From Tetramitus jugosus (Eukaryota; Protista; Heterolobosea): a DNA stretch of 64,000 nt. The stretch is taken from assembly GCA_937625935.1 (NCBI GenBank), contig OW569354.1, positions 124,001-188,000 of the forward strand. Direction: 5' to 3'. The notes under the pieces were generated by a model. It did no database searches. It worked only from the letters and a program-made list of their open reading frames with translations, and had not been told where the DNA came from. Both the position numbers and the translations under genes were made by a program. Shown in pieces: positions 2,037 to 58,110 of this stretch; position 1 is the stretch's first letter, and each line of letters starts with the position of its first letter.

Positions 2037-5000
2037 TTATTGGTATCCGACAATGGTGCCAAGATTTCTTTCAATCTGTTCAACGGACTTGTTTGTTCTT
2101 TGGGCATAGTCCTCAACTTGATCCTTTGCAATTTTACCTACAGCAAAGTACTGTGATTCCTCGTGTGCAAAGTACAAACCGGAAACAGCAGCAGCTGGAG
2201 TCATGGACAATGTCTCAGTCAAACCAATACCGGTTCTGCTCTCAATGTCTGCCAACTCCCACATAACCAACTTCTCATCGTGATCTGGTTGCGAAGGATA
2301 GCCGGGAGCAGGTCTAATACCTTGATACTTGATCTTGAGCAAGTCATCAGTGTCAAAATGCTCGCTAGAACTGTATCCCCAGTAGTCCTTTCTGACTTCC
2401 TCGTGAAGAACTTCAGCAAAGGCTTCAGCAAGACGATCGGCCAAAGCCTTGGTCATGATGGAGTTGTAGTCATCAAAAGTCTCTTCGTACTTCTTTACCA
2501 TAGCCTCAGCACCAAACACAGCAACAGCGAATTGACCAATGTAGTCCTTAATACCAGTTTGCTTTGGTGCAATAAAATCAGAGATACACATGTATGCTCC
2601 GTGCTTCTCCTTCTCGGCTTGTTGTCTCAAACCGTGGAAGACAGCCTTAACAGTTGTACGATCTTCATTCTCATACAATTCAATATCATCTCCAGAAGAG
2701 TTGGCTGGATAGAATCCAATAAGACCCTTGGCAACAAACAACTTCTCCTCAACAATTCTCTTCAATAAGTCTTGAGCAGCATCGAACAACTTCTTTGCTT
2801 CCTCACCTACAGTTTCATCATTGAAAATCTTTGGATAACCTCTGTTTGGATATTTGCCCTTCAATTGCCAAACAGCAAAGAATGGATTCCAATCAATTCT
2901 TGAAATCAACTTTGTTAGTGGGTAGTCCTCGAACACCTTTTCACCCATGAGGGTTGGTGCAGCAACTGGTGGTTGATTCACCCAATCTATCTGTAGCTTG
3001 TTCTTTCTGGCTTGTTCCAAAGTCAAGAATCTTCTCTCTTGCAATGATTCATAGTGCTCTTCTCTCAATTCATCATACAACTCCTTGATTTCGTCCATAT
3101 ATTCCGTTCTCTTGGCAGGGTCCAAGAGAGATGAGGCAACAACGACAGATCTCGATGCATCCAACACGTGAACAACAGGGGCATTATAGTATGGAGTAAT
3201 CTTGACAGCAGTGTGAGTTCTTGAAGTGGTAGCACCACCAATGAGGAGAGGAGCAACCAATCCTTGTCTTTGCATTTCCTTGGCAACGTGAACCATCTCA
3301 TCCAATGAAGGGGTAATCAATCCAGAAAGACCAATAATGTCTGCACCAATTCTCTTGGCCTCAGCAATGATCTTCTCACAAGGAACCATCACACCAATGT
3401 CAAACACCTCATAATTGTTACAACCTAACACAACACCAACAATATTCTTACCAATGTCGTGAACATCACCCTTCACAGTAGCCAAAAGAATTTTTCCAGC
3501 ATTGGATTGTTGAACAATACCTAGCTTTCTCTTTTCTTCCTTGATCTTCTCCATGTATGGAATCAAATAGTTGACTGCAGTTTTCATCACACGAGCACTC
3601 TTAATAACTTGAGGCAAAAACATTTTTCCAGCTCCAAACAAGTCACCAACAACATTCATACCATCCATCAATGGGCCTTCAATAACCCTCAATGGCTCAG
3701 GAAACTTTTGTCTGGCTTCTTCGGTATCCTCGATAATAAATTCAACGATACCCTTGATCAAAGAATACTTCAATCTTTCCTCGACAGAAGTATTTCTCCA
3801 TTCGAGGGCGCTAGCCTTCTTGACAGAACTCTCTCTAGAGTCCTTGTTTTCTCTCATTTCTTGAGCAAAGGCCAGCAATTGTTCAGTAGCTTCATTGTGA
3901 GTGTTCAAGATGGCAGCCTCACACAAATTCAAAATATCCTTTGGAATATCGTCATAAATTGGCAAAGCACCAGCGTTCACAATACCCATATCCATACCGA
4001 CCTTGATGGCGTGGTACAAGAAAGCACTGTGCATTGCTTCTCTGATCACTTCCAAACCACGGAAAGAGAAGGACAAGTTGGACACACCACCGCTAATCTT
4101 GGCATATGGCAAGTGCTTCTTGATAAGCTTGATCGATTCCAAGAATTCAACACCATAATTGTTGTGCTCATCAATACCAGTGGCAATGGTTAAAATATTT
4201 GGATCAAAGATGATATCTTCAGGTCTGAAGCCAACAATCTTGGTCAAAATGTTGTATGCTCTTTCACAAATGTCAAACTTGCGCTGAGCATCGGTTGCTT
4301 GTCCGACTTCATCAAAAGCCATAACAACGAGAGCAGCACCATACTTCAACACTTCCTTTGCATTCTTGATAAACTCAGCCTCACCTTCCTTCAAACTGAG
4401 AGAGTTGACAATACACTTGCCTTGGACACACTTCAATCCCTTCTCAATCACAGAGAACTTGGAAGAGTCAATCATGATTGGAATCTTGGAAATTTCTGGT
4501 TCGGACATGACCAAATTCAAGAATCTGTTCATGGCAAAGTGAGAGTCCAGCAAACCTTCATCGAAATTGACATCGAGAATCTGAGCACCTGCCTCGACTT
4601 GAGCTCTAGCAACAGCCAAAGCATCATCATACTTGTTGTTCATAACCATCTTCTTGAAACGAATAGAACCAGCAACGTTACATCTCTCACCAACGTTCAA
4701 AAAGTTGGATGAGCTAGTGTATCTCAATGGCTCCAAACCAGACAATCTCATGTCAGTAATCTTGGCAATTCTTTGTCTAGGTTTGTACTCTGCAGCCACT
4801 CTAGCAATAGCGGCAATGTGATCTGGAGTAGAACCACAACATCCACCAACAATATTGACAAAGCCAGATGCCAAAAAGTCGCGAACTTCTTCAGCCATCT
4901 CCTCTGGCTTTTGTCTGTAAGCACCCATCTCATCAGGCAAACCAGCATTTGGATAAGCAGAGACATAGCACTCTGCACACTCAGAGAGCGCTTGAACAAA

Positions 5001-5894
5001 CGGTCTCATTTGCTTTGTACCCAAAGCACAGTTCAAACCAACAGACATCATATCACTGTGCATGACAGAAATGTAAAAGGCCTCAGTAGTTTGACCAGAC
5101 AATGTTCTACCAGAAAGATCAGTAATGGTACCAGAAATGAACACTGGATATCTCATGTTCACTTGTTCAAAAAAGGTCAGACATGCGTAAATGGCAGCCT
5201 TTGCATTCAAAGTATCAAAAATGGTTTCAATCAACAAAATATCAGCTCCACCGTCAATCAAACCCCTGATTTGTTCCAAATAGGCAGTCACAAGTTCATC
5301 AAAAGCTATAGCAGGATTGAAATGTTCACCATGAAAATTGTTGTGTTAAATAAAAAAATTCATCACATGCCACAACAAAAAAAATACCAATAAGAAATAA
5401 AAAAAATACTTACAAACATTTCTGAATCCAGGATCTTCAACAGATGGTGAAATGGAAGCAGTTCTATTGGTTGGACCAAGAGCTCCAGCAACAAACCGAG
5501 GCTTGCTTGGATTCATTTGATTATACTTTTCACAAGCCTTCTTTGCCACTTCAGCAGAACACTTGTTTAGCTCATATGCCAAATGTTCACACTTGTAATC
5601 AGCTTGAGCAATCGTAGTACTAGAGAAGGTGTTTGTCTCAATCATATCAGCACCTGCTTCCAAATACTTTTCATGAATCTCTTGAATGATATCGGGTCGT
5701 GTAATACTCAACAAGTCATTGTTACCCTTGAGATCGTGAGAGTGATCCTTGAATCTCTCTCCTCTGAAATCTTCTTCTTCCAACCGATATCTCTGAATCA
5801 TGGTACCCATCGCACCATCGATAATCATGATACGTTGCGACAAAATGTCGGCCAGTTGTTGCTTCACTGGTGATGGTGGAATAAGAGAAGTCAT
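2037..5894 (-). CDS. metH: Cobalamin-dependent methionine synthase; 2 exons (intron 5306-5413)
   Basis: [23 protein letters not shown] pterin domain, B12-binding [12 protein letters not shown]-activation [14 protein letters not shown]. Splicing gives ...FRNV-SFDELV... Confidence 0.97.
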
Positions 5895-6213
5895 GTTGTC
5901 GTTTGTTTGGTTTTTTCAACAGGAAATATCAAGAGTAAAGAGAGGAGTTTGCTTTTGTTGTTTGCTTTATTGGAGCGAGTGCGTGTGGCGAACGGAAATT
6001 TTTTTTCACTCTGTGAGTGTGAGGGGTGTGTGAGCGGTAGAGAACACCAAATTGAGATCAGACGACATATTTCCCGATTGAATTTGCAGGTGAAATTTCG
6101 ACAACGTGTCCATCCATTCCAAAGCAATAAAGATCCATGCGTCGAAGAAATGCAGGCGAGGTTGGAGTGTCGCGAAGATACTTTCAGATAAAGTGAACAC
6201 GCAATGAATAGTT

Positions 6214-15790: not shown

Positions 15791-16903
15791 CTACACTGGG
15801 ACGTCCGAGTCTTCTCTGTGTGTTGATCTCCAGGTGACGTACACTTCATCAGTCCTGAATCTTTGTGTGATTGTGGCCTCATTCAGTGGTGTTGCAAAAC
15901 CATCCTGGAATTGCAAAATTCCGGCATAGGCAATCATGCATCCATTGTCAATACAATATCTATCATCCATAGCATGGAGCAATCCATTTCTATCTTCCAG
16001 CATTTGCTTCATCATCTCCTGTAATCGAATATTACAACCAACACCACCAACAATCAGTACTTCATTGATACCGCAATGAGCCATGGCTCTCTCCGTAATC
16101 TCCACCAGCATAGCAAACAGAGTCTCTTGCAGTGAGTAACACAAGTCAGCAGCAGTGCACTCATTGTTCTTAAGCATTGGTATTCCAAATTGCTCCACAA
16201 AACTTAAAATACCTGAAAAACTAACATCCATTCCCTTGACAACATATGGTATATCAACCAACTTTGTTCCCTGTTTTGCCAATTGTTCAATATTGTATCC
16301 AGGGCTCGGATCATTAGACAAATTAATCAATCTCGCAAATCGATCCAAACAATTACCAATTGCAATATCAATCGTCTCTCCAAAAATACGGTATCGATTC
16401 ATTGAATATGCAATGACTTGCGTGTTTCCACCACTCACATACAACACGATAGGATCCTCTGCCTTGCACACCACTCTACCCATCTCAATATGACCAATGC
16501 AATGATTGACACCAACAAGTGGAACGTTCCACAATTGAGAGATCACTCTCGCAACAACAGCAACACTATTCAAAGGTGCTCCCATGCCAGGTCCCTTCGT
16601 ATAACAAATGACATCAATCTGTGTTGGATCCGTCAATCCAGCCTCCAATATCGCATTCCTTGTCATTTCGTGAATATGTTCTTGATGATGAATGGCTGTT
16701 TCTCTTGGTAGGAATCCAGTTCCAGGTGGAGTAATGTACGTGTGACGCAAATTGCTGAGAATGGTGCCATCACTGGTGACGACACCAATGGCCAACTTGT
16801 TTGCTGATCCTTCCATGCCCAGTGCCACAAAGTATTTTCCATTCTTGGGTTGTGGCTTTGATTGTTTTTGGTTGTTGTGTTTGGAGAATGAAGTCGTGCT
16901 CAT
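15791..16903 (-). CDS. KAE1: tRNA N6-threonylcarbamoyltransferase (KEOPS Kae1/OSGEP)
   Basis: [66 protein letters not shown]. Confidence 0.97.
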
Positions 16904-24818: not shown

Positions 24819-24959
24819 TGTGAATTGTGTGCGTGTTGATGTTGTGTGTATTGATTGGGTTGTTTTTTCGTTTTTTGGTTGGTGTTTCCACCGTGTTCAC
24901 ACAAGATGCATTCAATGATTTTCTGGATTGGCAAAACACCGACAGACGATACAAAAGGT

Positions 24960-25032
24960 TGCCGAAAGCGTGGATCGAACACGCGACCTTAAGATCTTCA
25001 GTCTCACGCTCTCCCAACTGAGCTATTTCGGC
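24960..25032 (-). tRNA. tRNA-Phe (GAA)
   Basis: GCCGAAATAGCTCAGTTGGGAGAGCGTGAGACTGAAGATCTTAAGGTCGCGTGTTCGATCCACGCTTTCGGCA; full cloverleaf with anticodon GAA. Confidence 0.96.
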
Positions 25033-25072
25033 TTCTTGTTCATAATTCCATCGAATTGTACCATTTTTATTT

Positions 25073-25087
25073 TTGTGATGGAGAGTA
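25073..25087 (+). repeat. Target-site duplication, left copy (TTGTGATGGAGAGTA)
   Basis: Identical to 26514-26528. Confidence 0.92.
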
Positions 25088-26513
25088 GGGCAGGGTGGAT
25101 CAACCGAGTGAATCATATAGGCAAAGCATTGATCAAACGGGGTTCTGTTGCAATGCGGAGGTACCCCTCAGAATTGTTGCATGTGGCGTGCGATAATGGT
25201 GGCTTCGGTCTCCGTAGATTTGAGGAATCATTGCTGGTGAACACTGCTTGGTTCATCATCAACATGCTGAAAGGGAAGCATGATGGCGAGGCTCACAGAC
25301 TGTTGTTGGATACGCTTGAGGAGATCAGGCATCTACAAACATTCCAGGTAGAGAATGTATTCCAATCCAACAACAGGATTGAGCTCGTCGCACATAGCTA
25401 TCTTAAGTGGTGTGCTGTCCGTATGCACACCAACCACCTCACTATTTCTTGTGGGAATGAGGTCAACTGTCTGAGTTGCAATCTGGCACTCTCTCAGCCA
25501 AATGACATCATCAAAAGGTTGTTCAAGGTGGGAATAGGGCTGAGGAGTCAATTGACAGTGGGTGGAAAGTGGATCAGGCATAGCGAATTGGTCAAAAGGC
25601 ATGGAAATTTTGGAATTAGTTCTCGCAGATACAAGTACTTGACAAGTGACCTTGAAATGCTACAGTGCAATGGAAATCACGAGCATTCAGGCGACACTAC
25701 CCCAAGGTTAATGTACAATGATAGTTTTGAGGTCGTAGAGAAGGAACAGTTGTGGCGAGTCTTCTTGCGACGACATAGGGATAGGGTGAAAGAGGAGAGG
25801 GTATGGTGGATACAGTCTAAGTGTTTAGGAGGTGCTGTAGATTTTAAATTTATGAGATGCCCTTTCAGGGTCGACCGTGCACTGGAATGGTTTGTGGCTC
25901 AGGTGAAAAGTCACACAATTCACACTAAGGCCGTTGTCCAACATCTCTATGGAGTAGTGGACATGGATACGCTATGTCCCAAATGCAAATTTGAACAGGA
26001 AACGGTGTTACATTGTCTCGTTAGATGCCCGGTGGCGATAATGGCCAGAAAACTGTTGGTGAAGGAAGTTTCCACCAAGCTGAGTAAAATGGGTCTTCAC
26101 AAGGACCAAAGAGTAGACATGTGGTTCGACAACCAACGATGGAGCAACGGCGCATTACTAGTCAATAAGCGGAGGAAAACTAGCAAGGAATACATGCTTG
26201 GCATGTTGGGTATTGAAACAAGGGCGCTGAAACAAGTGATCAAAGGACTGACGAAGAGTGGAATAGAGAAGAAGAAGGCAAGGGAGAAGGCCCAACAATT
26301 TGTCGATCATACAAAGAGGAGATGTGTGGAGGTGATGCGACGCCTCTTCACGAGTTCAAAGGAGATTGCTGGTTGCTAATGCTCTACGAGCATTAGCAAC
26401 TACTTGAATCAATAATGACGGCATTCTGCCGTCACGAAACCGATACAGAGAATCAACAAAGAAGTAAAATGAGCAACCAACGGTTGTATTTAAAAAAAAA
26501 AAAAAAAAAAAAA
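25088..26513 (+). mobile_element. 5'-truncated non-LTR (L1/Tx1-like) retrotransposon
   Basis: ORF2 C-terminal remnant (post-RT GGFGL motif, zf-RVT CPKC..ETVLHCLVRCP), stop at 26379, 3'UTR hairpins, 22-A tail 26492-26513, 15-bp TSD. Confidence 0.92.
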
Positions 26514-42862: not shown

Positions 42863-43165
42863 ACTGGTAAAACTGAACAATCTTCTATTCCCCTTTTATA
42901 CAAGTTTTACTTTTCGATTATCGGATCCGACTTCCCGCTCTTCTTTTCGCCAAAAAAGAAGCAGTGTCGTGGTAGGAATCCTTGTCAATTATTCTTCGAC
43001 TCGTTAATCATTTGCCCAAGACAGACCGAGGACACTCAAACAAAATACCCAAGCTCTTCACACTCTCTCTTGAAAAAACCACGTAAGACAACTCCTGAGG
43101 AAATTTTATTTAGTTCAACTCTTTGTGTCCCAGAGTCCCAATTATTGGCTTAGTGTTGCGCGATC

Positions 43166-46100
43166 ATGAAAACATCGACAACGAAAAACAACAATACCAC
43201 GACAACCATACCACCAACCGCAACAACGGCGACTGCACCATCATCGGCAACGACAACAGCGTCACTTACTACACCTATTATCATCACGAATAACAAAATT
43301 GCTACAATGGAGGAGCGAAAACGGAGGAGAGCAGAAACCTTGGAGTTGCCTCCCGATGCTGTCACAGCTGAACGTCGTGGCAGCAACTCTAGAAAGTCAG
43401 TGTCTACGATATTTGGTTCGTTGCACATGTCGAAGGCAAACAAGACTCCCACTGGCACAGACTATGAAGATGATGAAAGAACAGATCCAGACAATTGTCG
43501 TGATGTGAGTCCACTGCCGTGTCATCATGATTCGTCGCCTTTATTGAGATCGGCAATGACAAGCTCCATGGAGTCATCATCATCGTTAGTGTCTTCTCAC
43601 GATGATATTTTGGAGTGGGCTGAGAAAACTTTGAAACAGTATAATGATCAGAGAGCGACTGATGAATTGGCCACGTTTTCTCATTGGTTCACTTGGCGGT
43701 ATTTAACTTTTTTCTTGGCTCTTTTTGTATTGATATTTTCGGTGCTTGTATTGGTGAGTGATGATCCTGGCCAGGTTGATGCTCATTTGGATGGAAAAGC
43801 AAAGTACACATGCACAAGTTTAGTGTTCATATTTGCATTGTTGTTGATAACTGATATCAATAATTGTTATCAGCAAATTAGTCAGTTGAAGCAACAAGTG
43901 TGCATGGTGGTTTGCTTTGTGAATGGAATTGCTCTTTTTACTGTACGTGTGATCGATTGTTGTCGATTAGAATATTTGAACTTTGTACGTTATTTGGGCA
44001 GTAGTTTTTATGATTGACACATACAATGTATTGATTGACTATAGAATGTTTGCCTGCAATTTCATTGGACTCCAGTACTCGCGGACTGCTTTGGTCGATC
44101 GCTTTATCCCATTCGATGTATGTATGATAATTTAATTGCTTTAAGTGCATGGTATCTAATTTCGTTTCTTACGTTACAATAGATTTAGAATGGACATTTA
44201 CGACACCGTGCCTACTGTTTTTGATTCATCGGTTAGTTTTTTCAATGAGATTTCCAGGAAAAACACATGGCCTGGACAAGAGCTTGGTGACATTGTTGCT
44301 TTGTGAGATTGCTATGCTTATTACAGGATTTTTGGGATCTTATTTGTCGAATCCATTGATGAGATTGTTGAGCATTATTCTCTCATTCGTGTTCTTTATG
44401 CCAGTAGTGTTGATATTGAATTATGAAATCCAAGATTGCCTCAATGGTTTGACTGCCAAGTTCTATGGCTCTGTACAAAGTTTACAATTTTTGCGCATTG
44501 TAATATTTTTGACATGGTCATCATTCCCAGTTGTATGGCTCATCTCTGCTATGGATCTAATTTCAATTGAGAATGAAGCGGTTGCGTATGGACTTTGTGA
44601 TCTGGGTGCAAAGTTCTGTCTATCAGTGCTGCTCGTCAGTGGTAACTTTGCAGTGTTGGATCACATGGATATAGTTCAAAGGATTCGAATTACAGAGGAT
44701 AATCGAAGACTGGGTGCAATGAATAGAAAGGTTGAACTGGATTCCAGGCTTCAGAGAAATTTTTTTGCAATTAGTGCACATGAGCTACGTACTCCATTGA
44801 ACTCTATTATCGTGTTTAACGAATTGGTGTTGGATATGGAGACTGCTCCTTTGAAGCAAGAGTATCTTCTCTCATCATTAACTTCAGCCAAAGCTTTGCT
44901 GTCAGTCATTAACAATGTATTAGATTTCACAAAGTATGAGTCGGGAGATTGGGAGCTCGATAATACCGAGTTCCATTTGTATCAACTGTTGGACGATGTG
45001 ATCGATATTGTATCTGCTCGTGTGAGTCGCGAGAGTATTCATTTGGAAGTCACTTGTACCAGTTGCAGAGATAAGCTTCTGTTTGCTGATATGACCCGTC
45101 TCAGACAAGTATTGCTCAATCTCGTGAGTAACGCTATTAAATTTAGCAAACAGGGATCAGACATCTATTTGGATGTTCACTTAGTTTCCGAGTCCGAAGA
45201 TTCCATCGAGCTCGAATTTGCCGTAATTGATCAGGGTGTCGGTATGGCTCCTGATAGCCTCGAGAGAATATTTCATCCATTTTTCCAAGTGAGTGAGACT
45301 TCTCACAAGCAGGACGGCACTGGGTTGGGTCTCGTTATTTGTAAGAGTATTGTTGGAAAAATGAATGGTGATATTGATGTGAAATCGACAGTTGATTATG
45401 GCTCAGAGTTCAGTTTCCGAATTCCAGTCAAGAAGGTTCGAGAGGCTGATTACTACCTCGAGTTTGAACAGGGAAAGATTGACAGAACTCTCATCATTAC
45501 TCCAAGAGTCGTATTTGGAGAGTTTCTTGGTGATTTACTCGTTGACTGGGGATCGGGCAAAGTTGAAATAATAAGCGATGTCCCACCAGATCACAAGTTG
45601 GGCGACTATAATCTCATTGTTGTCGATATCAGCACTGCCAGCTGGTGTGAAAGACCTGATTTTGAGAGATTAGCGAAAGGATATCAGACCAATTGTCTCT
45701 TTTTGATTCCCTTGATGGAAACAGAAAACATAGCAAAGCTTGTGTCTGTGAAACAGATTCTATCGAAGCCGATGAAGTTTTCCTCTCTGTATAACGCTAT
45801 TTCCCATCTGAAGGACAAGACAAGACGTCCTAATAGCAGTAACCATCAAGACAGCATCTTGCAAAATAACTATAATCCCTCAAAGAAAGATTTTAGGATC
45901 TTGATTGTTGAGGATAATCAAACGAACCAAAAGGTGGCAATGGCTATTCTTGCCAGAGAGGGATATTCTTACCATTTAGCAACCAATGGCTTTGAAGCAA
46001 TCGAAAAGGTTGGACAGAATAATTATGATGTCATGTATGTAACTCTTTTTATCCCCACACATCAATTTGAAAACTCACCCATCGTCTTTGACAGTTTAAT

Positions 46101-46350
46101 GGACTTGAATATGCCAAGATTGAATGGCTTAGAGGCATCAAAACTCATCAGAGAGTCCGAAACCAATTGGAGGAATCATATCATTGCACTGACAGCAGAC
46201 TCAACAGACGAAACCAAGAGGCAGTGCATGGCTCATGGAATGGATGATGTAATCATCAAGCCCATCAGTACAAAGCATCTCTCAGCTGTTCTAGATGTTC
46301 AATTCAAACAAAAACGCTCACAAACAAGTAACAAAGCATCAGAAACATGA
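43166..46350 (+). CDS. Histidine kinase rhodopsin: 8-TM type-1 opsin + HisKA + HATPase + degenerate REC + REC; exons 43166-43942, 44045-44117, 44183-46034, 46095-46350
   Basis: Spliced helix C GRSLYPIR|YLEWTFTTPCLL; helix F TWSSFPVVW; helix G YGLCDLGAKF (retinal Lys); H-box SAHELRTPLN; N-box NLVSNAIKF; DQGVG and GTGLGL; REC ILIVEDN..ILMDLNMP..IIALTA..KP. Confidence 0.9.
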
Positions 46351-46516
46351 ATAGCCAACAGTTATGATGTTGTATCACAATCAAGGAACAAGGAATAGTC
46401 ACACAAATTGTACAGGAGCAGATCAACTTTGCTGCCCTATTCTTCGAGCGAAAAACTTGAAGATCATCTCTATGTCAAACAGCAACATGGACAAGAGATT
46501 ATAAACAACCAATACT

Positions 46517-46834
46517 TCACAAAGTTGTTTGGCGATGCTTATTCTTCAAATGTTGTCTTTTTTGTACTTTGTCTTGATTGACCTGTATCTCTTCCAACTG
46601 ATAAATGGTTGTCTCCATGCCAAAGGACATGGCCAGCGAGCTTTGTTCGAGAACTTCAAACCTATTCATCGCTTCCTTACTCTCCTCCACTGATTATCGA
46701 GCACACCATGAGAAATGAAGTGAACTCAAACAGACTAGAAATCAACACTTACTTATTGAATTCAGTAAAATTGAAATCTGAGCCAAAGTTTCCACATCTT
46801 TGTTTCTTTCATCGTTGCTCGCTTGGTGGTTCAT
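46517..46834 (-). CDS. Putative 84-aa coiled-coil protein; 2 exons (intron 46690-46752)
   Basis: ATG in A-rich context; GTAAGT..TCAG intron gives MNHQASNDERNKDVETLAQISILLNSI|MEESKEAMNRFEVLEQ...QTTL*. Confidence 0.45.
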
Positions 46835-53900: not shown

Positions 53901-56900
53901 TCATGAATCATCAAATTCGTAGTTCTCTCTACACCGTATGCAATAATAATGATCTGGCCAATCTTCTGGATCTGGATCAGCAGGGTTGACTCGAACACTG
54001 AATCCTTCACAGCCGGGACAGCACACATTGTCACAGTCATCACCTTCACACATCAAGAGCTCTCCCTTCTTCTTGCATCTCATACACTGATTCTGGTGAG
54101 ACTTTTCTTCGTCATTATAATTATCACACTCTTCTTCATCATAATCTGACTCTAGCTCTGACTCTCCACAATCATCTCCATTGTGCAATTGAGAATACGA
54201 TGTCACAGATCTGTGTCTTCGTGTGGAAAGAATATTAGCAAGACGAATACCATCTTCTTCGTCTTCATCAGATTGTGTATTCTTCTTTGCAGTTCTGGAT
54301 ATCTTCGGTGACTTACAGGAGCTTCTACTAGTGGTGTTGCTTCGTTTCCGCTTTCCGGACTTCCCGGAAGATATAGGCTTCTTCTTAGATTGCAAGGCAT
54401 GTCCTCTCTTCTCAATTAATCGATCAGTGTATTCCTGAACAGTCAACTCTCGATCTGAATGCGGCTGTGTTGATACCAACAGATCATAGTGCTTCTCTAC
54501 CGTGGATATGTCAACATTATTCCTCTCACAACCCTTCACAACTACTCCATATGCTGCTACTGTGTCTGCTGTTGCTTGGTGTTGTTCATACTTATTCTTC
54601 CCAAAATAATACTCATGTAAACTGGGCAGTGACAATGACTCAAGTTCAACATGTTCCATCTGAGTGATATGCTTCACCACAAACTGCAGATCTGTGAATA
54701 GCAGATTCTTCATAAATCGCAAGCCAACACCAGCAAATAGTTTGACCAATAATCGATAATCATGTGATCTGCCAAAATATGCAGCCAGTGCAATCTTATC
54801 TGCGTTGACCATATTGAAGAAGTGCTGGATCTCAGAACAGACATGAATGGGGGTTGGTGCTGATCTCAATTGCTGCTTCGTAATTCCATGGATATCCACT
54901 TTGCCAGCACTGCCTTGCCTGACAAGACTGTTGAATACAATACCAGATCTGGGATGGTTGAAGCAAACGGATATAATCTGGAAATTTCCATTCCACTCAA
55001 AATCACAGTAGACAAAATCCTGAGCCACATGCTTCAGCGGACGGAGCTGCTTCTTGTCTGGTCGTTTCCACAACTCAGTGTATTTCATTCCAAAGGACAT
55101 TTCTCCGGAATGTTCTGATGTGACTGGTGCAGAGTCAACACTCTTGGTTGCCTTGATCATGACCTCATCCACCGTAACACTCATACTTCTCAGCTGCATG
55201 AAAGCCACTGCCTCTTGAGCGAATGATCCAATCATGTAGTCTCTACTCTCCTTTGTTCTAATTTTGAGTTGATGTTCCTCAATTAACTTGGCTCGGCTGT
55301 ACTGCTGATCATTGTATTCAGCTTGCTTCCGCTGGCGTCTGTTACTAATTGCAGCAATTGCAGTGTTTGTGCTCTGGATCTGAGTGTTCGTGTCGCTGTA
55401 ATATGCGTCTGTTCCAATGCTGGCTCGATGTAGATGATCTGGATGATGTTTCATTATTCGCTGCTGATTCACTTTGGAAAACACTATCAGAAATGCAAAC
55501 ACTGTGAATCTTCGTAACACTGCTCTGAATTCACCGAACAATCCTTCCAGCATATTTGTCATAAATAGATGCAGATTGAAGGTAGTAATACCAAAATGTT
55601 CCAGCAGTTGTCCCAGTGATTGAACAGACTCAGCATTGAGCAAGTATGAATCCAATGTCTCCTTTGGGAAATTGTATTTGCTGCAATCGAGAATTCCATA
55701 TACACTCTTCCAATGAGATAGTTCTGCTGTGTCTGCACTCAAACACTTACTATAATCAGATAGTTCAGACTTCTGTACACACTTGTGGTAGGTATTGTTC
55801 ATCAGACTAACAAGCCGAATTAAACCAGTGAATTGAGGAAACTCTTCCTGCAATACTTTCAGATAATCATCACTACATACAGCAGCCATATGAGACTCGC
55901 TTTGCTTGTCTGTTGTAAATATATCAGAAGGCTTCAATACCTTCCTCACTGCCTCAGAATTCTGGTATGTATAAATAATTGTATCCAGGCCAACAATATG
56001 TGTTGTATAAGCAACAATAGTCATAGAGACTTCACTGTCACAAGCAATCTCCAGGTGATCAAATGCTTTTGCAGGAGTGAGGATTCCAATCTGTACTGCA
56101 TTATCACCCGCTTCTCTGTGTCCACCTTCTACTTTCTCATCAAAATGGTGGACCGTATTATCATCTGAATGAATACAATGGTACAACACAGAGTTACCAC
56201 TTTTGCACTGCAATTGAAATGAACTAGAATAGTTGATAGTCAGCAACAGATAGTTGATTGCCTCTTGTCTACACCGAAGTACCTTTCTCGGCTTCAATAT
56301 GTACTTTGCGACAATACTGTACTCCTTCACTGGAATTAGAATTTGCTTGAGCTTCATGTTGCATTTGTCACTTTTGCACAAGTGACACACACAAATCATT
56401 GCTGGTAATTTCACCTGTGTTCCATCTTTGAGCTGAAACGGTGGTGTCTTCAATTGTAGATCCTTCAGAGCACTAATATTTGCTCCATCTGCTGCAAGTA
56501 AGCCAACATTTATATTGTGATCATTGCATGACCGAATACCTTCGGAAACTAAATCTGTAATTACTCCAGATGTCTCAGAATATGTGCAAGTGAATCCCAA
56601 TATCTGTGCCACTTCACCTGAAGCATGAACTAACAAACAAACAATAGCCTTCTTCGCTAATTGTTTGTGAGATAAACTGAGTAGCTGATTGAATAATACA
56701 TCATCATCGATGTCCGATATTTTGTGTATCTTCTGAGATTCACCATATATATATCCAGTGCTTCCAGATACTGTGATACCACTGATTAGCTGTATGCCAT
56801 CAATCATGATAGCCCAAAAGTTTTCTAGTTTCAACTCGGTCATTAATAGAGAGCAGAAATTGACATTATCTTCCATAATTCCATATTCATGCACGAGTGA

Positions 56901-58110
56901 TGGTGACATCTGGTCTATTAATGAATTTGAAGGAAGAATAAACACGAGATCTCGAACATCGTATTCTCCCTTATCTTCCTTGTCACCACTCTGTCCCAAT
57001 AAATATTGATACTTACGGCGACTGGTGTATGTGCGAATGTTATGACCGAGTATCTGCAATGGAACTGGATGACTCCAACTATGTTTGTTAAATATATTAA
57101 TGTTTCGCAACTGTGACGCGATGAATTGTGTAATCAATGCATCTGGTGGTAATCTGCCATTGCGTAATGCCTTCTTCAAATTTACAACTAATTCATTATT
57201 GTCTGAATCATCCTGTATGTCATATATGTGCTGTACGATTTGGATAATCTGGACAAACTACATTGAATAATTCTTCTTCGTCATCTAGATCACTCTGAAA
57301 ACTAAATTTCGGTGACTCATCGCCGGTCTTATGTCTACTTATTACTGTGCTTTGAATTGTATCTGTAATAACTTTCGATTCACTATGAACTATGATAACA
57401 AAGCTTCTGTTTGAGCCCTTCTTCTCAACATGCAAACACGGCTTCAGTATAACGCTCTTGTTGATATTGTTGATTGGTTTGCGACTAGTGACTTGCTCCT
57501 GCAGTACGTTCGATACAAATTGAGGTACTCCCATAAAGCCAGTACTCGCTGCGAGATGCTGAATCGCATTGACATGATGCTGTGCGAATGCCTGCTTCTT
57601 GGCAATCAAGTCATTCACTGTTAGATAGAGAATAGAATCTTTCGTTGTGCTCTGCTCGCGAGTAAATATATTGTTTGCGTTCGTTTTGTCGGAGATGAAA
57701 TTTTGTAATTTGGTCACGATCCCAGTGTCAAACAGATCCAGTGGTATTGGATAAGCAAACGATGGAATCTCATATCCTGCCATCACTTGATACGATAGAT
57801 AGTGATGTATATGGTACTGTGATACTCCAGAAACTAGTTCCAGCTCATTGTCAATCGAATTGAAATCATAGCGATGAGTCTCGAACAATTTCATTATCTT
57901 CTTGTGCATTGTGGAGTCAACAAATCCTTTGTATTGTAGAGCATAACTACCCTTGCTAGCTTTTGCTCTTCTGAAATAATCATTCATCAGTGCGTCATTG
58001 TTTGTTGTTTTCGCACGAATTTGTTCCAGAATAATGTCCCGAAATTGATTGAACCACTTTGACAGAGAACTTTCTTCACAGTGGTTATACCACAACACAA
58101 TCACAGACAA
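53901..58110 (-). mobile_element. P-element/THAP9-like DDE transposase fused to DEDDh exonuclease and PHD finger; upstream ORF 57220-58110 possibly joined by intron 57213-57261
   Basis: IMIDG, AADGA, CVCHLCK (C/DxxH), DKQS, TNMLEGLFGEFR; exonuclease YCDFEW..IHGIT..SHDYRLL..TD..HQATAD; PHD CMRC..LLMCEGDDC..C..YYCIRC. Confidence 0.7.

Follow-up and report, generated by a model that had tools for sequence, protein, structure and literature searches.

The window analysed here, the whole stretch of 64,000 nucleotides from Tetramitus jugosus (assembly GCA_937625935.1, contig OW569354.1, positions 124,001 to 188,000), contains a gene whose product is, by every sequence criterion tested, a histidine kinase rhodopsin (HKR) free of any cyclase. 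The gene is spliced and transcribed. What seems to be new is the lineage, namely an HKR in Heterolobosea, and not the architecture or the heterotrophic host. The coding region appears as two plus-strand open reading frames (ORFs), 43166-44017 and 44149-46350, and frame arithmetic gives a gene of four exons and 985 amino acids, as follows.

43166-43942, plus strand: exon 1, amino acids 1-259, with a low-complexity N-terminus rich in Ser and Thr, then TM0, TM1 and the greater part of TM2
43943-44044, plus strand: intron 1, 102 nt, GTACGT..TATAG, phase 0
44045-44117, plus strand: exon 2, a micro-exon of 73 nt, amino acids 260-283, with the end of TM2, the B-C loop and R283 (position R82 of bacteriorhodopsin, BR)
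44118-44182, plus strand: intron 2, 65 nt, GTATGT..AATAG, splitting the codon of Y284
44183-46034, plus strand: exon 3, with helices C-G, DHp, CA, the pseudo-receiver and the first half of the receiver
46035-46094, plus strand: intron 3, 60 nt, GTATGT..GACAG, splitting the codon of I901
46095-46350, plus strand: exon 4, with the second half of the receiver, a short tail and the stop

All three introns are GT-AG and AT-richer than the exons. Intron 1 has stops in all frames and a GC of 0.32, and intron 3 is in frame and stop-free, so that the ORF track reads through it. On paper the gene model is not unique, because 155 stop-free splice alternatives (136 with two introns and 19 with one) can be drawn. 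The first-pass annotation had predicted three GT-AG introns with exact junctions, enclosing the 73-nt micro-exon, and had named RNA as the check. Indeed, all three junctions are found at exactly the predicted coordinates, with the micro-exon spliced in, in RNA contigs from each of three public runs: X3, from organism A, and X8 and X10, which are soil metatranscriptomes. The X3 contigs are spliced with a poly(A) end and therefore represent RNA. Exon 1 is present in RNA as well, in contigs spanning 43062-43942, and skipping of the micro-exon would bring the frame to a stop at codon 261. The 28 best-supported strain differences in exons include 21 synonymous ones, and no key residue is affected by any of them.

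In addition, three minor RNA forms are seen around 43943-44144 of the window. X3 has one that uses another acceptor, at 44076 (depth 4 vs 36), and a contig in which intron 1 is kept (43916-44074, depth 15); the third is a non-canonical joint of 43942 to 44145 in a contig of X10. Each of them breaks the frame ahead of helix C, and splicing could thus tune the level of the receptor. As for the surroundings, only about 300 nt (42863-43165), where the strain indels are concentrated, separate the start codon from the upstream gene, which looks TFIIE-alpha-like by eye, has a poly(A) end at 42887 and gives no Pfam match at E 0.01. Downstream, an X3 contig from exon 4 reaches 46737 and overlaps a small convergent ORF; in this region (46350-46834) the minus-strand translation has short open stretches only.

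We then present the domains of the protein. The profile searches and folds took single exons or the unspliced ORF as input, and their scores refer to these parts.

43694-43759, plus strand: TM0-like extra helix, amino acids 177-198, KD19 hydropathy 2.88
43805-43867, plus strand: TM1 (helix A), approximately amino acids 214-234
44188-44646, plus strand: opsin helices C-G, from the PF01036 match, a residue check and a fold match
44752-44946, plus strand: HisKA/DHp, with H483 (nt 44779) and T487 in the motif HELRT
45088-45432, plus strand: HATPase_c, with intact N, G1, F and G2 boxes
45478-45825, plus strand: degenerate receiver-fold domain, keeping D765 and K812, without the acidic pair of beta-1 and the Thr/Ser of beta-4
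45898-46293, plus strand: canonical terminal receiver, with E860, D861, phospho-acceptor D904, T934 and K956, split by intron 3

The opsin is recognised from exon 3 alone, which matches Pfam Bac_rhodopsin (PF01036, E=1.2e-16, profile positions 74-221) and also solved microbial rhodopsins among PDB sequences, in answer to the profile check for a rhodopsin that had been proposed. In the AlphaFold model of exon 3 (mean pLDDT 86.8), helices C-G superpose on microbial rhodopsin structures with Z of 15-17.6 and an rmsd of about 2 A. Helix C reads R283-Y-L-E286-W-T-F-T290-T-P and continues to L297, and the E/T/L at BR positions 85/89/96 claimed by the first-pass annotation is thus found as E286, T290 and L297; likewise, the claimed equivalents of D212 and K216 are found in helix G as D423 and K427 (nt 44611), the latter being the Schiff-base lysine. 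The residues of the opsin are, with BR positions in brackets, E286 (85), W287, T290, T291, L297, E325 (115), M328, G332, W395, F398 (Y185), P399, W402, D423 (212) and K427 (216); in BR numbering, the pocket comprises R82, E85, W86, T89, T90, L96, E115, M118, G122, S141, W182, F185, P186, W189, D212 and K216. The counterion, with R283 beside it, is a two-carboxylate one, E286/D423. The signature of outward proton pumps (DTD or DTE with a carboxylate at BR96) is absent, and an ion pump is ruled out by the E/T/L motif with Leu at the proton-donor position.

Eight transmembrane helices are predicted. The extra hydrophobic helix claimed to precede TM1 is located at amino acids 177-198, the most hydrophobic segment, ahead of the helices that align with TM1 and TM2 of the relatives; it has counterparts in two related proteins described below (that of contig L001, from another organism, and that of Acrasis kona), and the alignment of exon 1 to two rhodopsin matches (P0095 and P0239) crosses it. 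Amino acids 219-259 align with residues 105-144 of a Goniomonas HKR (TM1-TM2), where the Pfam Bac_rhodopsin match of that protein starts. For the micro-exon, 14 of 24 residues are identical in L001, and 7-10 of 24 in six other rhodopsin matches. The single-sequence fold of exon 1 is of low confidence (pTM 0.32) and is not used as evidence.

Directly after the opsin follow HisKA and HATPase, which are matched in exon 3 by Pfam at 1.7e-13 and 7.3e-28 respectively and agree with the earlier assignment of both domains, the catalytic residues (H483, T487, N600, D633 and the G2 box) all being there. The distance from K427 to H483 is 56 residues, and helix G continues unbroken into the DHp helix in the exon-3 model. 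Two receivers had also been claimed. The terminal one is canonical, its Pfam Response_reg match being divided by intron 3; the first is only a degenerate receiver fold with no match in Pfam, NCBIfam or PDB sequences, so that two canonical receivers are ruled out by the missing acidic pair and switch Thr. The model of this first domain has a five-strand, five-helix pattern and falls with Atlas receiver clusters at 0.83-0.93. Since the receiver fold is there with acidic pair and switch Thr missing, it is probably a pseudo-receiver. The best structural match of the cytosolic part is Caulobacter ShkA (PDB 6qrj, Z 25.2, 353 residues), and the alignment extends across the degenerate domain. ShkA has the layout DHp-CA-pseudo-receiver-receiver; it is a soluble bacterial kinase without an opsin and is under c-di-GMP control, which is not implied for the Tetramitus protein. 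The stop lies 18 codons past the end of the Pfam match of the terminal receiver. In exons 3-4 Pfam matches no cyclase, as had been claimed, and no Hpt domain after the terminal receiver. The enzyme fused to the opsin is therefore HisKA-HATPase, unlike the cyclase of RhoGC or the phosphodiesterase of RhoPDE.

The protein resembles the 2c-Cyclops of Chlamydomonas and Volvox (Cop6, Vop6) and HKR1/Cop5, in which an 8-TM opsin is likewise followed by DHp-CA and a receiver (PMC6284317). They share with the Tetramitus protein the His, the Thr at H+4, the G box and the receiver Asp, and the Lys-to-His spacing of Cr2c-Cyclop1 is 54 (K298, H352; PMC6284317). However, these proteins end in a guanylyl cyclase, and a 2c-Cyclop identity is ruled out for a protein with no cyclase domain. 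HKR2 differs in another way, lacking the usual counterion carboxylates (PMC8815786) that are present here.

Relatives of the opsin part are numerous, with 94 matches in an exhaustive search; a word-based search with the same part returns none, which is a limit of the tool given those 94. In metagenomes, the search for a naturally spliced transcript gives a match in the HK region only, and there are no matches among viral contigs. The named relatives are from Acrasis kona, Goniomonas avonlea, Luapelamoeba hula, Cymbomonas, Nephroselmis, Chroomonas, Haematococcus and Chlamydomonas incerta. The long top matches that were scanned are rhodopsin-HK-REC proteins, and those of Acrasis, Goniomonas and Luapelamoeba have rhodopsin, HisKA, HATPase and receiver with no cyclase match; several relatives, including that of Chlamydomonas incerta, have a Lys-to-His spacing of 54. 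A tree built from helices C-G together with the kinase core (six partial rows omitted, root not inferred) pairs the gene with L001 (100/99) and then with Acrasis (94/85, not starred). These three lie inside a larger group (93/97) to which the amoebozoan, goniomonad, prasinophyte and cryptophyte proteins belong; those of Chlamydomonas and Haematococcus stand apart. The tree of the opsin only does not resolve the position of the gene. The HKR-like cluster P0060 includes MGB1591753.1, labelled as an archaeal MAG, which groups with cryptophyte-type proteins in the tree and may thus be a eukaryotic contamination of the archaeal bin.

Three related HKRs are found in Heterolobosea, the present one included. 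The protein of L001 (SRR25336392) is 47-51% identical to the Tetramitus one; the three intron positions are shared, and the micro-exon is 73 nt long here too. Its gene, at 2950-5940, keeps the helix G Lys and carries Leu in place of the nearly invariant W of BR position 86. Beside it lies the gene of an 863-aa protein that matches RADX weakly, which shows no synteny with the window. The Acrasis kona protein KAL0484602.1, annotated 'NIK1, partial', is likewise heterolobosean with TM0, opsin, HK and receiver, is about 30% identical and, unlike the Tetramitus gene, has no introns in the N-terminal part of the opsin. At its locus (L003 4689-7324, JAOPGA020001056.1) the frame is open for 104 codons upstream of the annotation, encoding TM0-TM2. 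Its HisKA His is replaced by Asn and its receiver Lys by Arg, which suggests that this species, whose fruiting is light-induced, has a pseudokinase rhodopsin. To judge from these residues, the Tetramitus copy is more complete than either relative.

The host had seemed beforehand to be a non-photosynthetic amoeboflagellate-type protist, and one marker gene supports a non-algal host related to Naegleria. This is KAE1, on the minus strand of the same window (15794-16819), which groups with Naegleria lovaniensis and Willaertia magna (SH-aLRT 96) and falls outside the Naegleria-Willaertia pair in a quick tree of this one gene. The host is thus most likely a heterolobosean on this marker. An algal host or contamination is ruled out by the GC content, uniform across the window, by the RNA junctions and by the KAE1 grouping. 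Near-identical DNA and RNA are found in soil, sediment and groundwater samples. Elsewhere in the window, 53901-58110 holds an ORF of 1092 aa, in which a DEDD-exonuclease-like and a PHD-like part are apparent, next to another ORF; by eye only, the two look like a mobile-element or virus-derived island. A 483-aa ORF (24928-26379) has, also by eye, a C-terminal Cys/His motif like a non-LTR retrotransposon zinc finger.

On the whole, we consider it likely that the protein is a hybrid kinase that binds retinal, is probably inhibited by light and signals into an Hpt relay, perhaps on to RegA and cAMP. The protein would form an 8-TM dimer, both of its ends cytosolic, with retinal on K427. Photoisomerisation of the retinal would shift helix G, which leads straight into the DHp helix, and so alter the balance of kinase and phosphatase activity at H483. 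Because light inhibits His-to-Asp transfer in Cr2c-Cyclop1 (PMC6284317), we lean, by analogy, towards a kinase that is active in darkness and switched off by light. Phosphate would then pass from H483 to D904, the middle receiver being structural or regulatory, and D904 would exchange it with a separate Hpt protein and response regulator, a step that is proposed because no effector is fused and that is the usual relay in eukaryotes (PMC6324907). RegA is the best-grounded candidate for the output, since amoebal sensor kinases act on it, it controls encystment, and Naegleria has it (PMC3906536, PMC9928731); that a RegA-type cAMP phosphodiesterase in fact ties light to cAMP/PKA and to encystment or excystment is a tentative proposal.

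Two points speak against a light sensor, namely the partial degeneration of the L001 (W86 to Leu) and Acrasis (His to Asn) relatives, and the groundwater samples among the holders, where light is scarce. They would also fit an alternative in which the opsin was mostly retinal-free in the cell and a non-light cue, such as membrane state, a lipid-like ligand or retinal from prey, controlled the kinase, the decay touching the pocket in one relative and the kinase in the other, and the habitat being soil and groundwater. This reading is unlikely, however, for a copy that retains K216, D212, R82, E85, W86, T89, T90, M118, G122, W182, P186 and W189 together, in a group with known light responses and BLUF sensors (PMC11589745). 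The protein may instead be a true photopigment that serves mainly as a slow bistable switch, or as the heterodimer partner of a kinase-dead paralog, and reports light history or day and night instead of driving an acute response. HKR1 and NeoR are bistable and RGC/NeoR form heterodimers (PMC8815786), for the Rhod-HK of Ostreococcus a role as clock input via HPT has been modelled (PMC4343026), and Acrasis does have a His-less relative; the E/T/D counterion, however, is unlike that of the Chlamydomonas incerta relative (V/M around the 84-85 positions), and we regard this as quite improbable. Finally, a mis-joined pseudogene or an algal contig in the assembly, for which the many stop-free splice models, the minor frame-breaking junctions and the intron-1-retaining contig could be cited, is scarcely credible against exact junctions in three RNA runs, the same introns in L001, the uniform GC and the KAE1 marker with Naegleria and Willaertia.

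Against the literature, the light-inhibited hybrid kinase that we prefer is less unusual than first thought. The suggestion that this architecture in a non-photosynthetic protist points to an undescribed kind of pathway is not supported, the architecture being known from Acanthamoeba (PMC4053784) and Thecamonas (PMC6324907). Acanthamoeba castellanii, a non-photosynthetic free-living amoeba, has two rhodopsin-HK-response regulator proteins, with type-1 rhodopsin, C-terminal HK and receiver, which are near algal HKRs and proposed as light sensors (Clarke et al. 2013, PMC4053784), although it belongs to Amoebozoa and not Heterolobosea and is likened here by description, not by sequence. In Thecamonas trahens, a heterotrophic flagellate and marine apusozoan, TtrahHK4 is likewise an HK of the bacteriorhodopsin type (Kabbara et al. 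2018, PMC6324907). The HPT route, too, was already proposed for the Ostreococcus tauri Rhod-HK (Ot-HKR), acting via a separate HPT on a response regulator (PMC4343026); there the host is photosynthetic and the output is the clock (TOC1), and the likeness again is one of description, not sequence. Ot-HKR has been counted among 'noncanonical HKRs' (PMC13739731). With the architecture and non-photosynthetic protist hosts on record already, the surprise is limited.

The novelty that seems to stand is at the level of the lineage: no heterolobosean ortholog or HKR report was found in the literature accessible without subscription reviews. The survey of 24 HKs in N. gruberi names PAS and GAF as the only sensors and no rhodopsin (PMC6324907), the Naegleria pangenome paper has no 'opsin' (PMC9928731), and the Acrasis genome paper leaves rhodopsin unmentioned and credits the blue-light response to BLUF proteins (PMC11589745). 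The gene extends HKRs to Heterolobosea, where light sensing was attributed to BLUF (PMC11589745; Naegleria photoactivated cyclases). Such a family is easily missed, with the rhodopsin signature cut by a 73-nt exon here and the Acrasis relative labelled only 'NIK1'. Three HKRs were characterized as of a 2022 review, and all characterized enzymerhodopsins regulate cGMP (PMC8815786); because of this, the compact, intact and cyclase-free protein of 985 aa is a practical candidate for tests of a light-gated phosphorelay and for optogenetic kinase tools. It is a doubtful extrapolation, still, that Heterolobosea (Discoba) own an old undescribed HKR clade, absent from the surveyed N. gruberi set, which supplies soil amoebae with a retinal-based light input and feeds an Hpt-RegA-cAMP relay controlling encystment or development beside the BLUF sensors. 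If it is true, the intact Tetramitus copy would be a good substrate for showing that a cyclase-free HKR of a heterotroph transfers phosphate under the control of light.
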